DNA from: Dendrobates tinctorius
Lineage: Eukaryota
Direction of reading: 5' to 3'
DNA length: 64,000 nucleotides
NCBI RefSeq assembly: GCF_039654945.1
Contig: NW_027361889.1
Span: 3,224,001 to 3,288,000, forward strand
Shown here: positions 38,455 through 49,600 of the stretch, piece after piece
How positions within the stretch are numbered: position 1 is the first letter of the stretch
Layout: each line of letters starts with the position of its first letter
Translations under genes and position numbers: made by a program
The notes under the pieces: model-generated
Database searches by the model: none
Told to the model about the DNA's origin: nothing
Seen by the model: only the letters and a program-made list of their open reading frames with translations

Positions 38455-40837
38455 TTATACTTCGGCAGCAATACACTTAGCTATTAGGAGTCTTACATAT
38501 ACTATACTTATACTGGACAATGGGACTATTCGCATTATACCATCCTAGGTCCACATCGTATCCTATCGTTTGTCTCCCTATTTAAATTATGCCATCTGAT
38601 TTCTCCCGCCGATATTGTACATCTTTTATGATGCATTTGCGGTCCTGACCCCTCCGGCTAAACATCACCTACTGGCTTTAACACCTTCACCCCCAAGGGT
38701 GGTTTGCACGTTCATGACCGGGCCAATTTTTACAATTCTGACCACTGTACCTTTATGAGGTCATAACTCTGGAACGCTTCCATGGATCCCGGTGATTCTG
38801 ACAGACATTGTTTTCTCGTGACATATTGTACTTCATGTTAGTGGTAAAATTTCTTTCAAATAACTTGCGTTTATTTGTGAGAAAAACGGAAATTTGGCGA
38901 AAATTTTGAAAATTTCGCAATTTTCCAACTTTGAATTTTTATGCCCTTAAATCACAGAGATATGGCACACAAAAAACTTGATAACTAACATTTCCCACAT
39001 GTTTACTTTACATCAGCACAATTTTGGAACCAAAATTTTTTTTTGTTAGGAAGTTATAAGGGTTAAAAGTTGACCAGCAATTTCTCATTTTTACAACACC
39101 ATTTTATTTTTAGGACCACATCACATTTGAAGCCAATTTGAGGGGTCTATATGATAGAAAATACCCAAAAGTGACACCATTCTAAAAACTGCACCCCTTA
39201 AAGTGCTCAAAACCACATTCAAGAAGCTTATTAACCCTTTAGGTGCGTCACAAATTTTTTTGAATATTTAAAAAAAAAATGAACATCTAACTTTTTTTCA
39301 TAAAAAAAATACTTCAGGTTCAATTTTTTTTATTTTACCAAGGGTAACAGGAGAAATTGGACTGCAAAAGTTATTGTGCAATTTGTCCTGAGTACGCAGA
39401 TACCTGATATGTGGGGGGGAACCACTGTTTCGGTGCATGGCAGAGCTCAGAATGGAAGGAGCGCCGTTTGACTTTTTCAATGCAAAATTGGCTGGAATTC
39501 AGATTGGACGCCATGTCACGTTTGGAGAGTCCCTGATGTACCTAAACAGTGGAAACCCCCTACAAGTGACCCCATTTTGGAAACTAGACCCCCCAAGGAA
39601 CTTATCTAGATATGTTGTGAGAACTTTGAACCCACAAGGGCTTTACAGAAGTTTATAACGTACAGCGGTACAATTAAAAAATCATATTTTTTCCACAAAA
39701 ATGATCTTTTCACCCTCAATTCTTATTTTTCCAAGGGTAACAGGACCGTAAAAGTTATTGTGCAATTTGTCCTGAGTATGCTGATACCCCACATGTGGGG
39801 GTAAACCACTGTTTGGGCGCATGGCAGAGCTTGGAAGGGAAGCAGCGCCATTTGATGTTTTTGGCTGGAATTGAGATCGGACACCATGTCGCGTTTGGAA
39901 AACCCCTGATGTACCAAAACAGTGGAAACCCCCCCACATATGACACCATTTTGGAAACTAGACCCTCTAAGGAACTTATCTAGATGTGTGGTGAGAACTT
40001 TGAACCCCCATGGGCTTCACAGAAGTTTATAACATAAAGCCATACAATTAAAAAATCATATTTTTTCCACAAAATTGATCTTTTCACCCTCAATTCTTAT
40101 TTTTCCAAGGGTAACAGGACCGTAAAAGTTATTGTGCAATTTGTCCTGAGTACGCTGATACCCCACATGTGGGGGTAAACCACTGTTTGGGCGCATGGCA
40201 GAGCTCGGAAGGGAAGCAGCGCCATTTGACGTTTTTGGCTGGAATTGAGATCGGACACCATGTCGCGTTTGGAAAACTCCTGATGTACCAAAACAGTGGA
40301 AACCCCCCACAAATGACACCATTTTGGAAACTAGACCCCCTAAGGAACTTATCTAGATGTGTGGTGAGCACTTTGACCCCCTCAGTGCTTCACAGAAGTT
40401 TATAATGCCCGGGCGTGAAAATAAAAAATTCGTATTTTTTCCACAAACATGATCTTTTAGTCACCATTTTTTTATTTTCCCAAGGGTACCAAGAGAAATT
40501 GGACCCCAAAAGTTGTTGTCCAATTTGTCCTGAGTATGCCGATACCCCATATGTGGGAGAAAAGTCTTAGTTACTCACCGGTTAACGGTATTTTTCGGAG
40601 TCCATGACAGCACCACCTGAGAGAGGGGATCCGCCCTTCAGGAACAGGAAACCTACAGATACAAAAGGGCGGCACCTCTCCCACGCATCAGTTGGATTAC
40701 AGAGCACAAGAGGACCACAATGGTTAATAGCAAAATTTATATACAGTGTTTTTTATACAACTATTCCTTACTAGTGTACATATAAGAGAAAGAAGTGCAT
40801 AATCAAATTTAACTACAAAAGGGGGGGGAATATACGG

Positions 40838-40923
40838 GTGCTGTCATGGACTCCGAAAAATACCGTTAACCGGTGAGTAACTAAGACTTTATTCGGTCGT
40901 CCATGACAGCACCACCTGAGAGA
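40838..40923 (-). other. DIRS internal complementary region (ICR)
   Basis: Juxtaposed reverse complements of both element termini joined at a shared TTT. Confidence 0.92.
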
Positions 40924-40945
40924 TTTACAGAGAGTAATAACTATT

Positions 40946-43486
40946 TTAGGGAGGGACTACAGCCTGCAGTACCCTTATACCAAAAGAGAGGTCTGTGGAA
41001 GCACCCAAGTCTAGCCTATAATGATTATAAAAGGTGCTCGGAGAGGACCAAGTAGCCGCCTTACATATCTGGTCAATGGAGACTTCTGATCTCTCGGCCC
41101 ACGAGGACGCCATGGCTCTGGTGGAATGCGCCCTCAGTTTTGCAGGTGCCGGTCTGCCCTTTGAGGTGTATGCAATTGAAAGAGCCTCTCTAATCCACCT
41201 AGCTAGTGTATTTTTTGACACTCTACAGCCTTTCCTGGGACCTTGATGGGAGATAAATAGGGCATTCTCCTTTTTCCAGGGGTCAGTAACCGCCAGATAT
41301 TCTTTAAGGCATTCTCTAACATCTAAGGTGTGTAATTTCTCTTCCTTCTCATTAGCTGGATTAGGGAGGAAGGATGGAAGGACTATTTCCTGTGTTCTAT
41401 GAAAGCTAGAAACTACCTTTGGTAAGTACGCCGGGTCAGGTCTGAGTATTACCCTATCGTCCTTAAACTGTAAATAAGGAGGACGCCTAGATCAGGGGTC
41501 CCCAACCGCCGGTCCGCGGCCCAGCACCGGGCCGCTGCAGTGCCCTTGCCGGTCCGCGGACACAAGGGGAGCCAGGGGCGGTCAGTGGCTTAGCGGGGGC
41601 TGGGGCGGCGCACAGCAATTCTTAGCGGCAGCCAGGCAGCGATCCAAGCAGCTCCGCTGCCTGCAAGAGGGAATAGCAGGAGCGGAGCTGCAAGGACCCG
41701 TCCAGCTTCCTGCCCGCCGCCCGCGCTTCCTGTCTCTGACACAGAGAGGAGAGCGCCGCTGCTGTGTGAGAGCAAGGACGCGCGGGCGATGCTGCGACAG
41801 GTGAGAGGTGGTGTGTGTATATATTATGTGTAATGTGTGTGTATGTATGTATGTCTGTCTGTGTGTGTACATGTGTGTGTGTATGTATAATGTGTGTGTG
41901 TGTATGTATAATGTGTGTCTGTGTGTGTGTGTACATGTATGTGTGTGTTTGTGTAGCCTGGCCCTGGAGGAGATGGGGACATGAGAAGGCCATGAGGGGA
42001 GTGATGGAGAGACGGCAGTGATGGGGTGAAGGCAATGATGGGGAGAAGGGAGTGATGGGGTGAAGGCAATGATGGGGAGAAGGCAGTGATGGGGTGAAGG
42101 CAATGATGGGGAGAAGGGAGTGATGGGGTGAAGGCAATGATGGGGAGAAGGGAGTGATGGGGTGAAGGCAATGATGGGGAGAAGGGAGTGATGGGGTGAA
42201 GGCAATGATGGGGAGAAGGGAGTGATGGGGTGAAGGCAATGATGGGGAGAAGGGAGTGATGGGGAGAAGGCAATGATGGGGAGAAGGGAGTGATGGGGAG
42301 AAGGGAGTGATGGGGTGAAGGCAATGATGGAGAGATGGCAGTGATGGGGTGAAGGCAACGATGGGGAGACAGCAGTGATGGGGTGAAGGCAATGATGGGG
42401 AGAAGGGAGTGATGGGGTGAAGGCAATGATGGGGAGAGGGGAGTGATGGGGTGAAGGCAGTGATGGGGTGAAGGCAATGATGGGGAGAAGGGAGTGATGG
42501 GGAGAAGGCAATGATGGGGAGAAGGGGGTGATGGAGCACTTATTCAAAACCTATGGTGAGTTGAGTCACATTATAAATGTTATTTAATTATAAGTATGCA
42601 CTGCTACACTACAACCGCGTCCATAGCCCCGCCCCTGCCACACCTCCATCCCCGCCCTGCCGGGCCACGGAAGAATGGTCTTGCTTGAAACCGGTCCCTG
42701 GTGCAAAAAAGGTTGGGGACCACTGGCCTAGATAATGCCTGGATGTCGCTTACTCTTCTAGCTGAAGTTAGAGCTACCAGGAAGGCTACCTTGAGGGACA
42801 GGTTTTTTATAGAGGCTGATGAGATGGGTTCGAATGGAGCTTCTGTCATGGCTGTGAGGACTAGGTTCAAGTCCCATGGCATGAATCTATCCTTCACCAC
42901 TGGCCTGGATCTACCTGCTGCCTTGATGAATCTACTGACCCAGTAATTACCCGCGATGTTGCAGTTAAAGAGGGCCCCCAAGGCTGAAGCTTGTACTTTG
43001 AGGGTACTAGTGGAGAGCCCCATTTCTAGACCTTTCTGAAGAAATTCTAAGATCTGATTTATAGGAGCCGAACCCCCAGCGACTACTCTAGAGTTCTTTA
43101 GGAATCTTTTCCAAATTCTGACATAGATCTTGGTAGTAGTGATCTTTCTACTTTTAAGTAGAGTGTCAACCAGGTCTGGGGAGAAACCTTTATCTTTCAG
43201 TAGTGTCCGTTCAAACTCCACGCCGTCAGATGTAGGCCAGCCACCTGAGGATGAAAGACTGGGCCCTGGGATAGGAGATCCGGGATCTCCGGCAGGACCC
43301 AAGGATCGGACACTGACATGGTCCTGAGGCATGAGAACCAAGCCCTCCTGGGCCAAAACGGAGCGATCACTGTAACTTTCGCTCTGTCTCTCCTGATTTT
43401 CCTCACCACTAGAGGTAATAGCGATAGGGGAGGGAAGGCATAGGATAGCCCGAAATCCCACTTTATCAGCAAGGAGTCTACCGCCA
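40946..43486 (-). pseudogene. DIRS tyrosine recombinase ORF interrupted by hAT MITE
   Basis: TSARRVSD, AHSTRA, AATW, HY catalytic motifs; removing 41493-42733 rejoins the frame (IQALSRRPPYLQF). Confidence 0.9.
41493..42725. mobile_element. hAT (Charlie-like) non-autonomous element with internal (TG)n and purine-rich minisatellite
   Basis: TIR CAGGGGTCCCCAACC/GGTTGGGGACCACTG; perfect 8-bp TSD GCCTAGAT. Confidence 0.92.
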
Positions 43487-45093
43487 GGGGGGTCTTCTCT
43501 GGGATTTAGTGAGCAAAACTGCCTTACTTTCCTGTTTTCCTTGGTGGCGAAGAGATCTATCTCTGGCAGTCCCCACTTCTGTACAATCAGGTCGAAGATA
43601 GAGTTTTTTAGGGACCATTCTCCTTGCCTTAAGAGATTGCGGCTCAGGAAATCTGCCGTGATGTTTTCTTTCCCCTTTATATGTAGAGCTGTTAATGATA
43701 GAAAATGCTGCTCTGCTAGCTGGAACAGCCGTTCTGCTACATTCATCAGGGATTTGGAACGGGTTCCGCCTTGGTGGTTGATATACGCTACGGTGACCAG
43801 ATTGTCGGAGAACACACGCACATGATGGCCCTGTAGATACACAAGCAGTTCTTTAGCCGCCAGCTCTACTGCTGTCAATTCTTTCAAGTTGGATGACATC
43901 TCTATCTGATGATGCTCCCATAGGCCCTGGACCAGAATTTCCCCCATATGAGCCCCCCAACCGGAAGGGCTAGCATCCGTGGTGATTATGCGGGATATGT
44001 CATATTCCCAGGGAACCCCTCTGGATAAATTATTTTCGTCTAGCCACCATTCTAGGGACTCCCTTGTGTTTCGGGACAAGGTTAGCTGGCCCTCTAAGTA
44101 ACCCCCAAGCATTTTTTGATGCCTTAAGACCTCGCCCTGTAGAGTTCTTGAATGAAACTGGGCCCACTGGACCGCCGGGATACAGGAGGAAAGTGAACCT
44201 AGAAGGGACATGGCTTTCCTGAGGGACATGGTCGGGTTATTGGAAGCGTTCAGGACCTGATAGTGCAGGCGAACCAGCTTCTCCGGGGGCAGACGGCATT
44301 CCTGTTTTACGGAATCTAGGATGAGGCCCAAGAATTGTTGGATTCTCATGGGCTGTAACCGAGATTTTTTAATGTTAAGCAGCCATCCTAACCGTTCTAG
44401 GGCAGACCTTGCCCTTTGTAGCTGTTGCAAACAATGGTTAGCCGTTTTCCCTACAATCAAGAAGTCATCTAAGTAGGGAATTACTAAAATGTCTGATTCA
44501 CGTAGATGGGCCATAACTTCCGCTACTACTTTAGTAAACACACGGGGAGCGACTGCCACCCCAAAGGGGAGGGCCGCATACTGGAAATGTTGAACTGACC
44601 CATCTAACTGCACTGCCACTCTGAGAAAACTCTGATGATCTGCATGAATGGGTATATGGTAGTAGGCATCTTTCAAATCTAACACCACCATGAAGCAGTT
44701 TTGAAACAGTAATTTTATTGTTGAATTAATTGTTTCCATCTTAAATGGGCGTGTGACCAGGAATTCATTGAGGGATTTAAGATTTATTATGGTCCTAAAG
44801 GAACTGTCTGGCTTGCGGACCAGGAACAAAGGGGAGTAGAAACCTTTCCCCCTTTCTTCCTCTGGAACTTTAGTTAGGACCTTTTTATGGCAAAGATCCC
44901 GAACTTCAGCTTCCAGGGCAGACTGTTCTGATGAGGATGACCTAAGAGGAGTGACCTTAAAACGATCTTGGGGAACCCGGGAGAATTCTAGTCGTAGGCC
45001 CGCAGCTACCACCCCCAGTATCCAGTTGCTATTAGAGATTAATGCCCAGGCCGGGTAGAAGGCAGCTAGTCTCCCCCCTACCGGAGCAACTAG
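43197..45093 (-). CDS. DIRS pol: RT, RNase H, adenine-methyltransferase-like domain; +1 indel at G6 43487-43492
   Basis: PVGGRL, DLKDAYYH, LPFG, YLDD, TDAS..GWG, DLFAT, YAFPP. Confidence 0.9.
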
Positions 45094-46662
45094 TCATTGG
45101 GGGCGGCTTTTTAGTGTCCCGTGCTGGACCTTCCTGGCGCCCCCCTCCTCCGAACATGAATCCAGTACCTCTCCTTCTTTTGTCGTCCCATCTGCCCTGA
45201 TCCCTGGACGGCCTCCTACGGAAATATCCTTTCCTGGTAAAGGGGCGTCTAAAAGAGGGGTTCGGCAGACTGGGGAACTTCTTTTTATCGTCCCCGGCCT
45301 TCTCTAAAAGTTCATCCAGGACGGGCCCAAACAGGTATTCGCCCTCACAAGGAATGGAACAGAGTCGAGATCTGGCCTGGATATCTCCTGGCCAGCATTT
45401 TAACCAGAGAGCCCTTCGAGCTGCGTTGGATAAACCTGCGGATCTAGCCGCCATTCTCGCAGAATCTGCTGACGCATCAGCCAGAAAAGCAGCAGCACTT
45501 TGGATAACTGGTAAAGCTTTTCGAATGTATGCTCTTGAGGTTCCATCCTTCAATTGGGAATCCAGCTGATCCAGCCAGACCATCAAGGATCTGGCCGTAC
45601 ATGTGGCCGCTACCGCTGGTCTCAAGGCACCCGCTGACATCTCCCATGTTCCTTTCAGAAAAGAATCCGCTTTTTTATCTAGCGGGTCTTTTAAGGAGGC
45701 CATGTCATCGAAAGGTATGGAGGACTTTTTGGAGGCTTTGGCCACTGCCGCGTCCAGCTTAGGGGCCTTGTCCCATTTGGTTACCACTGGGTCATCAAAC
45801 GGGTACCTTCGTTTGAAGGCAGGTGGCAAAGAACCTCTTTTTTCTGGCTTTTTCCATTCTCTATCTATTAGGTTCTGGACTTTATCATTCAACGGGAAGG
45901 ATCTGCGCTTTCTGGGATCTAGGCCTCCGAACATCACGTCCTGTGCCGAAAGTTCCGGTTTTGTGTCTGCTACCCCCATGGTGGACCTTACTGCTTTAAC
46001 TAACTTATCCATCTGGTCTAAAGGGAAAGCAGAAACGGCTCGAGTCTTCCTCTGAAGATGAAGTGGAGGCCGGGGAATCTGAGGAGATATCGATTCCAGG
46101 TGCGGCCGAGGACTCTGAACCCGAGAGGTTAACATCTCTTCCCTTAGAGGAGTCCTTTTTAGATAGGGCCTTCATTTCTGTCCTGATTATCTCCCTCAGG
46201 CTTGTGATGAAGTCTGGTGTTTCTTCCGCCACCTGTATGGACGGGGAAGAGTGTAAGGGCCTGTCAATCTACCCCTAGGGTACCGTCCCCATCCAACCCC
46301 TACCGCTTGTCGCACGCATGGCTGACACAACTTTTTAGGGTGGCCGTCTGGCAAAGGGCAATTACAGAGGGTACATTCCCTGTGCTTCTGCTTCCCCGTA
46401 GCTTTCCTTGCCTGCGAAAGAACGAAATAAAACACTGCATCAGGGTACATTCACGGAGATCTCTTACCCATGCAGACGAGGCAGGTACCGGGTCACGGAG
46501 GGAGGCAGGAGGGTCCTTTAGCCTGGAGGAACTTCTGTGGCTTTGTTCGCCCGTCCGTTTCTTCTTCTGCTGGCCACTCGCATGTAAATTCGCTGTGGCC
46601 TGTTTCTCTGGGCGCTCCTGCGCCTCGTCCTGCTGCTCTGTGGGGGCTTCTGTCGAATCCAT
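45094..46662 (-). CDS. DIRS ORF1/gag, predicted spliced (exons 46662-46468, 46411-46304, 46232 onward); indel near 46021
   Basis: Phase-0 GT-AG introns join three ORF pieces; CxxC..CxxC finger; PKLDAAV, RRALWL, LFGPVL typical of DIRS gag. Confidence 0.75.
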
Positions 46663-49600
46663 TGCTGGGCCTTCAGAAGCACCCCAGCAGCGTCACCTCC
46701 TGTGCTTTTAAAGCCTCCCACAGTGTCCGGGTTAGCAGGGCTCTGGCACGGCACCTCCCCCCCGGGTCCCCCTCCCCCCCCCCCGGGGCCGCGGGCCGCC
46801 CCAGACCGCCGAGCACCGGCGGCGCATCCCGGAAAGCCGGCCGGCACCCGACTTCCGGTTTCGGCGTTCCCGGCCCCGCCCCTTCCGCCGCGCGATCAAG
46901 ACCGCGGGAGCGCGCGGAAAGGAGCCGGCACGGCGCCCCCGGCTCCGGAATGCCCGCCGCCCCCACATGCGCCGACCTGCGCCCGCCGAACAGGCGCGAC
47001 CGCCAGCCCCCGGCGAGAGAGGGAGAGAGGAGCAAGCGGAGACCGGGTGAATGCAACAGGAGGGGTTCCAGGGGTCATACATACCTTGTGCCGGCCCTAT
47101 GGAGACGGCTGTCCACCGGACCCTCTGCTCCGCCTGCTCCAACCACTGTCGTGGTGACCTACCCGGCCCCACCGTGGCGCATCCAGGGACCCGAGCTTGA
47201 CCGAGGTAGGAGACCCCCCCGCTACCTGGGTCGGTCAGCCGGCCTGGGAATCCCTCGACGACTCCATGATGGACCATCTGTAGGAAGTCCCGTCCTATAG
47301 GAACAGGAAACCAACTGATGCGTGGGAGAGGTGCCGCCCTTTTGTATCTGTAGGTTTCCTGTTCCTGAAGGGCGGATCCCCTCTCTCAGGTGGTGCTGTC
47401 ATGGACGACCGAATAAACTACTGTATGGGCACACGTCGGGGCTCGGAAGGGAAGTAGTGACGTTTTGGAATGCAGACTTTGATGGAATTGTCTGCGGGTG
47501 TCATGTTGCCTTTGGAGAGCCCCTAATGTACCTAAACAGTGGAAACCCCCCACAAATGACACCATTTTGGAAACTAGACCCCCCAAGGAACTTATCTAGA
47601 TGTGTGGTGAGCACTTTGAACCCCCCAGTGCTTCACAGAAGTTTATAATGCCAGGGCATGAAAATAAAAAAATCGTATTTTTTCCAGAAACATGATCAAT
47701 TAGTCCCCAATTTTTTCATTTTCCCAAGGGTAACAGGAGAAATTGGACCCCCAAAAGTTGTTGTCCAATTTGGCCTGAGTACGCTGACACCCCATATGTG
47801 GGAGAAAACTACTGTATGGACACACGTCGGGGCTCGGAAGGGAAGCAGTGACGTTTTGGAATGCAGACTTTGATGGAATGGTCTGCGGGTGTCATGTGCG
47901 TTTGGAGAGCCCCTGATGTACCTAAACTATTGAAACTCCCCACAAGTGACCCCATTTTGGACACTAGACCCCCCACGGAACTTATCTAGATGTGTGGTGA
48001 GCACTTTGAACCCCCAAGTGCTTCACAGAAGTTTATAACACTCGGACGTGAAAATAAAAAAATCATTTTTTTCCACAAAAATGGTATTTTTGCCCCCAAT
48101 TTTTTATTTTCCTAAGGGTAACAGGAGAAATTGGACCCCAAAAATTGTTTTGCAATTTGTCCTGAGTAGGCTGATACCCTACATGTGGGGGTAAAACACT
48201 GTTTGGGCGCATGGCAGAGCTTGGAAGGGAAGGAGCACCATTTGACTTTTTCAACTCAGAATTGGCTGGAATTGAGATCAGACGACATGTTGCATTTGGA
48301 GAGCCCCTGATGTGCCCAAACAGTGGAAACCCCCCAATTATAACTCCAACCCTAACCCCAACACACCCCTAACCCTAATCTGAGCCCTAACCCTAATGGG
48401 AAAATGGAGATAAATACTTTTTTTTTAATTTTATTATTTTTCCCTAACTAAGGGGGTGATAACGGGGGCGTTTGATTTACTATTTATGGTGGTTTTTATG
48501 TTTGGCAGCTGTCGCACGCTAAAAGACGCATTTTATTGTAAAAATAGTTTTTGCATCACCACATATTGAGAGCTATAATTTTTCCGTATTTTGACCCACC
48601 GAGTCATGTGAGGTCTTATTTTTTGCGGGACGAGTTGACGTTTTTATTGGTACCATTTTCGGGCACGTGACATTTTTTGATCGCTTTTTATTCCTATTTT
48701 TGGGGCGCAGAATGAACAAAAACCAGCGTTTCATGAATTTCTTTTGTGGGGGTGCGTTTACACCGTTCCGCGTGCGGTAAAATTGATAAAGCGGTTTTAT
48801 TCTTCGGGTCAGTACGGTTACAGCGATACCTCATTTAGGTCGTTTTATGTTTTTGTCGGTTTTATGCAATGAAAACTATTTTATATAAAAAATAATTTTT
48901 GCATCGCTTTATTCTGCGAGCTATAACTTTTTTATTTTTTCGCTGATGATGCTGTATGGCGGCTCGTTTTTTGCGGGACAAGATGACGTTTTCAGCGGTA
49001 CCATGGATATTTATATGCGTCTTTTTGATCGCGCGTTATTACACTTTATGTTTGGCGGTATGATAATAAATCATTATTTTTTGCTTCGTTTTTTTATTTT
49101 TTAAGGGGTTCGCTAAAGGGGTTAACTAATGGGACAGTTTTATAGGGCGGATCATTACGGACACGGCGATACCTAATATGTGTACTTTTATTGTTTTTTT
49201 TTATTATTTCCAAAAAATGGATTTATTGGGGGAATATTTTTTTTTTTTTCTAATTTGGCGATTTTTTTTAAAATAATTTTAACACTTTTTTTTATTTTTT
49301 TTTTTACTTTATTAAATAGTCCCAGGTGGGACATCACTGTCCTGTGACAGATCGCTGATCTGTCACATCACAGACCACTGTGACAGATCAGCGATCTGAC
49401 ACAGGCACTGCAGAAGGCTTCCTCATGCCTGCGCTTTGCAGGCACTGAGGAAGCCAGCTTCCTCAGGCCCCCGTTGCCATCTTGGATTCGGGGGCCTGGA
49501 GGAAAGGAGCCCCCCGCAGCAGCGCTGCACATTGCGCTGCCGTGGGGGGCTCAGGGAAGCACGGAGGGAGCCCCCTCCCTGCCGATGCTTCCCTTTAACC

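Follow-up and report, generated by a model that had tools for sequence, protein, structure and literature searches.

The element and its gag-pol junction

In frogs and salamanders, DIRS elements account for much of the genome. One DIRS1-like retrotransposon copy lies on the minus strand of a 64,000-nucleotide stretch of the Dendrobates tinctorius genome (contig NW_027361889.1, positions 3,224,001 to 3,288,000), here called the window, whose numbering is used throughout. The copy carries the features by which such elements are recognised: a LAP2alpha-related gag, a pol with reverse transcriptase (RT) as well as RNase H, a tyrosine recombinase rather than a DDE integrase, and inverted terminal repeats with an internal complementary region. 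The inverted terminal arms (40600-40698 and 47308-47406) are 99 nt long and 99% complementary, and internal complementary arms (40561-40614 with 40837-40890, and 40888-40923 with 47382-47417) match the two ends. The subject here is the boundary between gag and pol, where a UGA stop codon in the context CAA-UGA-CUAG forms a candidate site of stop-codon readthrough (Table 1).

On the minus strand the junction reads AAG CCG, five C (45103-45099), AA, TGA (45096-45094) and CTAG (45093-45090), with the codon CAA (45099-45097) directly before the stop. The TGA shares the frame of pol (codon starts 0 mod 3), which is then open for 829 codons, down to 42604, and whose first methionine is codon 119, within the Pfam RVT_1 match (residues 92-258). 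An earlier note on this DNA had placed TGA and CTAG here, in frame with pol, and had remarked that pol has no ATG until well inside the RT; its letters, coordinates and frame are correct, and so is the remark. The gag open reading frame (ORF) has codon starts 1 mod 3, which puts pol at +1 relative to gag in the window, and it extends 21 codons past the TGA. Aligned with relatives, the window gag leaves the frame only a few codons short of the TGA, either in the run of five C or beside it: the relatives end in ...Q, the window copy reads ...KKPPP-M. The caveat of the note, that gag arrives one base out of frame, holds, and the offset lies at this run. The extra base may be a mutation or a homopolymer assembly error.

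Table 1. Features of the DIRS1-like copy in the window
Feature	Position	Strand	Remarks
DIRS1-like retrotransposon copy with terminal repeats	40561..47417	-	inverted arms enclosing gag, RT, RNase H and recombinase
gag ORF	45032..46135	-	367 aa, LAP2alpha-like; Pfam PF11560, E = 4.9e-16; final 21 codons beyond the family stop
Run of five C	45099..45103	-	window gag leaves the frame used by relatives to reach the TGA
CAA-TGA-CTA-G, candidate recoding site	45090..45099	-	last gag codon, gag stop and readthrough context
Codons of the pol N-terminal motif VGGRL..F...W	45046..45081	-	begins 12 nt after the stop
Proposed hairpin	45051..45084	-	arms 45084-45074 and 45062-45051
pol (N-terminal region, reverse transcriptase, RNase H, downstream domain)	43489..45093	-	in frame with the TGA
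Tyrosine-recombinase ORF remnants	42760..43921	-	43921-43493 in the -1 frame, 43482-42760 in the pol frame; matches the L002 recombinase ORF
TG microsatellite	41811-41954	.	interrupts the recombinase region
34-nt minisatellite	42002-42534	.	15.7 copies, 93% matches; interrupts the recombinase region

The junction in related copies

Relatives were collected by a gag protein search, after which the DNA of these and further copies was fetched (34 loci) and their junctions were read. The search returned 61 homologous proteins, mostly annotated from anuran genomes, and those closest to the window gag come from D. tinctorius (P0001, 72% identity) and Ranitomeya imitator (P0002, 70%). Of the 13 gag proteins in the alignment, nine have Q as their last residue, opposite ...KKPP of the window copy.

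In three copies, one from D. tinctorius (L001) and two from R. imitator (L002 and L013), an intact gag ends with CAA-TGA, and CTA-G follows. Their pol continues in frame 0, the frame of gag, for 796, 544 and 631 codons, respectively; neither of the remaining frames stays open beyond 100 codons. L033, a decayed copy from R. imitator, matches them in all ten bases and in local frame layout, and the window copy is of the frame-0 type from the CAA onward. CAA-TGA-CTA-G is identical in all five copies and, among the 34 fetched loci, is confined to the gag-pol junction. The earlier note had asked whether the family gag ends at this TGA; compared copy by copy, the intact relatives do end gag there, with pol in frame 0. 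Within the 64-kb window the 10-mer CAATGACTAG occurs once, against 0.16 occurrences expected from shuffles. By itself this single occurrence is weak evidence, and the weight lies in the recurrence of the 10-mer at the same junction in relatives.

Conservation and coding constraint

Five codons after the stop begins the motif VGGRL..F...W, of which V5, G6, G7, R8, L9, F12 and W16 are invariant in 10 lineages. No ATG stands between the stop and this motif, nor is there one in the first 118 codons of the pol frame. Across the four frame-0 lineages, invariance after the stop extends to 57 of 98 first and second positions of codons, compared with 5 of 49 third positions; NG86 estimates between these lineages give a dN of 0.21-0.34 and a saturated dS. 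The constraint at first and second positions combined with the saturation of dS indicates that the region is translated in the pol frame and that its silent sites have turned over fully.

The linker at the junction is variable (LVAP, LAIP, LAVQ, LADQ), and the flanking codons differ in every lineage. CAA-TGA-CTA-G is the sole long invariant run within it, in elements where CTA accounts for 16-27% of leucine codons and CAA for 23-41% of glutamine codons. Because synonymous sites between the lineages are saturated, the invariance of the ten bases points to selection on them. Conservation of CUAG had been named in the note as a check, and it is found in every frame-0 copy despite the turnover of silent sites. 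CTAG also follows the layout: it is present in 5/5 frame-0 copies and in 0/7 sister lineages whose pol lies in +1. The fixed block is made up of the codon ahead of the stop, the stop itself and the four bases that follow. It coincides with the span for which deep mutagenesis of human readthrough genes found consistent effects; consistency from gene to gene was confined to the -1 codon and CUAG (bioRxiv 10.64898/2026.07.14.738498).

The junction shares sequence properties of the UGA-CUAG readthrough class. CUAG follows the UGA immediately, and stop and context are conserved across diverged lineages (5/5 frame-0 copies). A downstream ORF in frame 0, under coding constraint and devoid of its own start, is present in L001, L002 and L013; the window copy has the pol side only.

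Readthrough as the probable route to pol

Stop-codon readthrough yielding Gag-Pol is probably the best explanation for the poison-frog DIRS family, because the ten bases are invariant, gag and pol lie in one frame and synonymous sites are saturated. The layout, the conservation of the motif and the downstream coding constraint are directly observed; that readthrough takes place, and at what level, we infer. In the proposed mechanism, the site would be the gag-pol boundary, with gag and pol in a single frame that is parted only by the UGA in CAA-UGA-CUAG. Most ribosomes would terminate at the UGA, giving Gag, and a few per cent would insert an amino acid there and continue into pol, giving a Gag-Pol fusion. 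The low Gag-Pol ratio that retroelements need would then be obtained without a frameshift, a pol start codon or splicing. The signal would consist of the stop together with the preceding codon and the following four bases, and a downstream hairpin would not be needed. In HEK-293T cells, UGA-CUAG gives 3.5-31% readthrough and 12 nt 3' of the stop are sufficient; UGA is the best of the stops, a purine before the stop is preferred, and the four host genes have kept the motif across the vertebrates (PMC4132726).

Several points weigh against this explanation or narrow its reach. The window copy is unable to use the site as it stands. The frame-0 sample comprises five copies, about four lineages, from two poison-frog genera plus the window species, which are closely related hosts. 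The five copies may form one clade, in which case the layout may have arisen only once. A test of this grouping does not reject it (p-AU 0.40), and the star-like pol trees neither show nor reject a single origin. The cited efficiencies of UGA-CUAG were measured in human, not frog, cells. The stretch is present in 20 sequencing runs of one organism, all of them contigs whose RNA or DNA nature is uncertain. The in-frame UGA-CUAG layout is not mentioned in the accessible DIRS literature, and a prior description in older DIRS structure papers is possible.

Alternative explanations

The earlier note had also proposed that a 3' stem-loop aids readthrough. The pairing itself stands: in the window the hairpin forms; it begins 9 nt past the stop and has a core of 9 bp. 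Its stability does not exceed that of dinucleotide shuffles (z = +0.29 for 81 nt, -0.44 for 70 nt). RNAalifold returns no shared fold (-4.7 kcal/mol for 4 sequences, -0.1 kcal/mol for 11 sequences), and Rfam has no meaningful match at the junction. The stem covariation that the note had suggested looking for is absent across copies: no pair shows a compensatory change in the four lineages, and 500/500 shuffles reach the observed scores. A conserved stem-loop or pseudoknot ~8-16 nt after the stop, as in structure-stimulated readthrough of the murine leukaemia virus (MLV) or alphavirus type, was not found at this junction. The hairpin does not keep its register between copies, and as a conserved element it is unsupported by these comparisons.

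It is unlikely that readthrough requires such a hairpin, in which G-rich Val-Gly-Gly codons would pair with pyrimidine-rich Phe-x-Pro codons. The hairpin does form in the window and, in another register, in L013, and the window structure keeps 80.6% of cells paired across four lineages, as against 35-61% with a slid partner; this slide control is biased, because the structure came from a sequence that was itself among those tested. Under recoding that preserves protein and codon usage, the window and L013 each reach p = 0.08, with 0.24 for L001 and 0.71 for L002. Among sister lineages, L011 reaches p = 0.01 and L014 p = 0.03, and the mean z over 11 lineages is -0.83. Set against this, the z scores from dinucleotide shuffles range from -1.2 to +1.4, L001 and L002 fold weakly, and the pairing arises from the invariant Gly-Gly and Phe codons. 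The mammalian UGA-CUAG cases, where 12 nt downstream suffice (PMC4132726), argue in the same direction.

A separate structure is seen in L011, a copy of the +1 layout: a 17-bp hairpin just after the gag stop (L011:4011-4085; -33 kcal/mol, z = -3.2, p = 0.01 against protein-preserving recodings). It is possible that this hairpin stimulates recoding in its own family.

Pol could also be made apart from gag, through a spliced or subgenomic RNA, through non-AUG initiation just after the stop or through reinitiation, the UGA then being a plain end of gag. This is quite improbable. Splicing has in its favour one annotated R. imitator gene model, P0092, in which gag is linked to pol across a skip of ~99 nt at the stop, from GT to a pyrimidine-rich AG; the skipped 'intron' would delete the invariant VGGRL..F motif and so looks like a gene-finder artefact. 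A GUG start lacks conservation: GTG is the Val codon of VGGRL in L001, L002, L013 and L033 and could serve as a start, yet the window and L006 have GTA there. Initiation at AUG is no better placed: the pol frame has no ATG for 118 codons, and the ATG that overlaps the stop (A-ATG-A) opens a frame that closes after 8-26 codons.

Annotated frog proteins that fuse gag with RT (P0092, P0005, P0063, P0066-P0073) do so by the ~99-nt skip at the stop or by a frame switch near a C run or the IPCEG motif. They were rejected as natural fusions and resemble either mutated copies or bridges that a gene finder has built across the candidate recoding site. For annotation, this means that gene finders split these DIRS elements or bridge the stop with false introns, as in P0092.

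The shared CAA-TGA-CTAG might instead be a functionless inheritance from one ancestor, or be kept for RNA packaging or for pairing of CUAG with a downstream xUGG. The possible single clade of the five copies would suit the former, and in each of the four lineages CUAG can pair in the region of the invariant Trp codon (pairs 4-7 with 48-51). Functionless ancestry sits poorly with saturated synonymous sites and neighbouring codons that differ in every lineage, with a fixed block that matches the known readthrough core, and with long intact downstream frames that show recent activity. This set of explanations is accordingly given little credence.

A programmed +1 ribosomal frameshift in the window copy or family, which the note had raised as an alternative, is implausible to the point of being nearly dismissed: pol is at +1 to gag in the window, as it is in seven sister lineages (Bufo, Engystomops, Ranitomeya, Phyllobates and a Logan sample), but the offset lies at a homopolymer, a typical site of mutation or assembly error, the nearest relatives are all frame 0, and in the window the TGA shuts the pol frame, so that a shift would have to fall within the four codons that separate the stop from VGGRL, where nothing slippery or likely to stall ribosomes is seen.

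Sister families with pol in +1

The +1 layout is seen in copies from Bufo (L003), Engystomops (L004), R. imitator (L005, L011 and L012), R. variabilis (L014) and Phyllobates (L015) and in five Logan contigs (L006-L010). Their gag stop lies at the homologous place, mostly as CAA-TGA-C and never followed by CTAG; it is UGA in six of the seven lineages and UAA in L005. In these copies pol overlaps gag by 191-338 nt, and three of the seven lineages have no ATG in the overlap in the pol frame. The spacer from the stop to the Val of VGGRL measures 12 nt where pol is in frame 0 and 13 nt in six of the +1 lineages; L003 has 7 nt, and the decayed L034 has 11 nt. The layouts thus differ by single bases in a short linker.

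The frame past the gag UGA is itself open for 596-963 codons in five of the seven +1 lineages, across the RT region: 963 codons in L003, and 596-833 or more in L004, L011, L014 and L015. In L003 the last 494 residues of this open frame (L003:4117-7005) are a tyrosine recombinase, 44% identical to that of L002, and readthrough in copies of this type would give a Gag-recombinase fusion. An open frame after the gag stop is likewise seen in L012. It is conceivable, though doubtful, that the anuran DIRS gag stop is a conserved recoding hub that has been rewired. One leaky stop would then feed Gag, a Gag-recombinase product by readthrough and a Gag-RT product by a +1 shift; in poison frogs the spacer of 12 rather than 13 nt would put RT behind the stop, and only there does the optimal CUAG occur.

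The contigs L006-L010 come from five runs that belong to a single study and do not differ in gag or at the junction; the +1 frame in them is open for >700 codons, and the RT alignment ends after ~55 residues. They may represent an expressed rearranged or non-autonomous derivative. The decayed Anomaloglossus copy L034 reads AAG-TGA-CTC and, with its 11-nt spacer, is uninformative. Further afield, a metagenome scan gave 17 distant DIRS-like loci (27-38% identity). Their layouts vary, and they are too far removed to inform on the poison-frog family. On one metagenome contig (38% pol identity) an in-frame TGA lies two codons before VGGRL and is followed by CCG (L016:187-189). A protein search with the short pol N-terminus gave one weak match, and a scan of viral contigs gave no match.

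State of the window copy

The window gag aligns to the intact relative L002 over 46030-45170, and the window pol (45093-43489) is 65% identical to residues 1-535 of the L002 pol in a local tblastn alignment. The Pfam RVT_1 match has E = 8e-19, and the RT_RNaseH match, at E = 5e-4, is below Pfam's threshold. A methyltransferase-like domain after RNase H has no Pfam match at E <= 0.01 in the window; only a DLFAT..N stretch is visible by eye.

The recombinase, whose ORF in L002 has a weak Phage_integrase match, aligns in the window in the -1 frame at its start and in the pol frame further on, which locates a frame switch near 43490. As the recombinase ORF switches to the pol frame (43482-43493), pol and recombinase read as one frame in this copy; the change is either a break or a lineage-specific fusion. 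The recombinase region extends below 42760. With gag out of frame, a frame switch in the recombinase and satellite interruptions, the window copy is a dead relic, defective in at least three places. A tandem array (47415-48350) directly adjoins the 5' end of the element, with units of ~390 bp in three copies that are 64-97% alike.

Comparison with known systems

In its general build the element agrees with described DIRS1-like elements (Piednoel et al. 2011, PMC3266345; Xenopus families, PMC9210276), which share the LAP2alpha-like gag, the RT/RNase H and the tyrosine recombinase, as well as inverted terminal repeats with an internal complementary region and overlapping ORFs. In those studies DIRS ORFs were defined by ORF finders (PMC3266345, PMC9210276), in the Xenopus study from ATG only (PMC9210276). 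DIRS papers (PMC3266345, PMC9210276, PMC6681497, PMC3783388) describe the overlaps of the ORFs, not how pol is reached from gag, and a review of animal-virus readthrough makes no mention of retrotransposons (PMC13517186). To our knowledge, the junction presents a known recoding signal in a class of elements where it has apparently not yet been described. The accessible literature does not address the route by which the polymerase of vertebrate DIRS elements is translated, and a motif shared with host genes and alphaviruses gives a directly testable answer. The sister families offer a natural comparison, having the same stop position and pol in another frame.

The closest likeness in sequence is to the vertebrate UGA-CUAG genes OPRL1, OPRK1, AQP4, MAPK10 and MDH1 (Loughran et al. 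2014, PMC4132726), which have the same core UGA-CUAG and a purine before the stop. There, too, the motif is conserved over long times, coding conservation continues downstream and no 3' structure is required. In the host genes, readthrough lengthens a host protein by a short stretch at its C-terminus, whereas the DIRS extension would be a polymerase of ~540-800 residues in a mobile element; the site would thus set the ratio of Gag to Gag-Pol.

In logic the junction resembles the gag-pol boundary of gammaretroviruses and epsilonretroviruses (Moloney murine leukaemia virus, MoMLV; Beier-Grimm type III), where gag and pol share a frame, are parted by a single leaky stop and yield a Gag-Pol fusion as the minor product. 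MoMLV differs in using UAG-GGA with an obligatory pseudoknot 8 nt downstream, whereas the DIRS junction has UGA-CUAG and no conserved structure was found there. Unlike a gammaretrovirus, the DIRS element lacks both a protease and a DDE integrase, its recombinase being of the tyrosine type.

The alphavirus nsP3/nsP4 opal codon (type II, UGA-CUA or UGA-CGG; PMC13517186) likewise places UGA-CUA(G) ahead of a polymerase, and VEEV even has CAA before the UGA. The CAA-UGA-CGC of the sister DIRS lineages is close to the UGA-CGG form of alphaviruses (PMC13517186). Alphaviruses differ in being RNA viruses with extended stem-loops of 68-177 nt that start at +9 to +16 (PMC13517186), none of which is supported in the DIRS junction.

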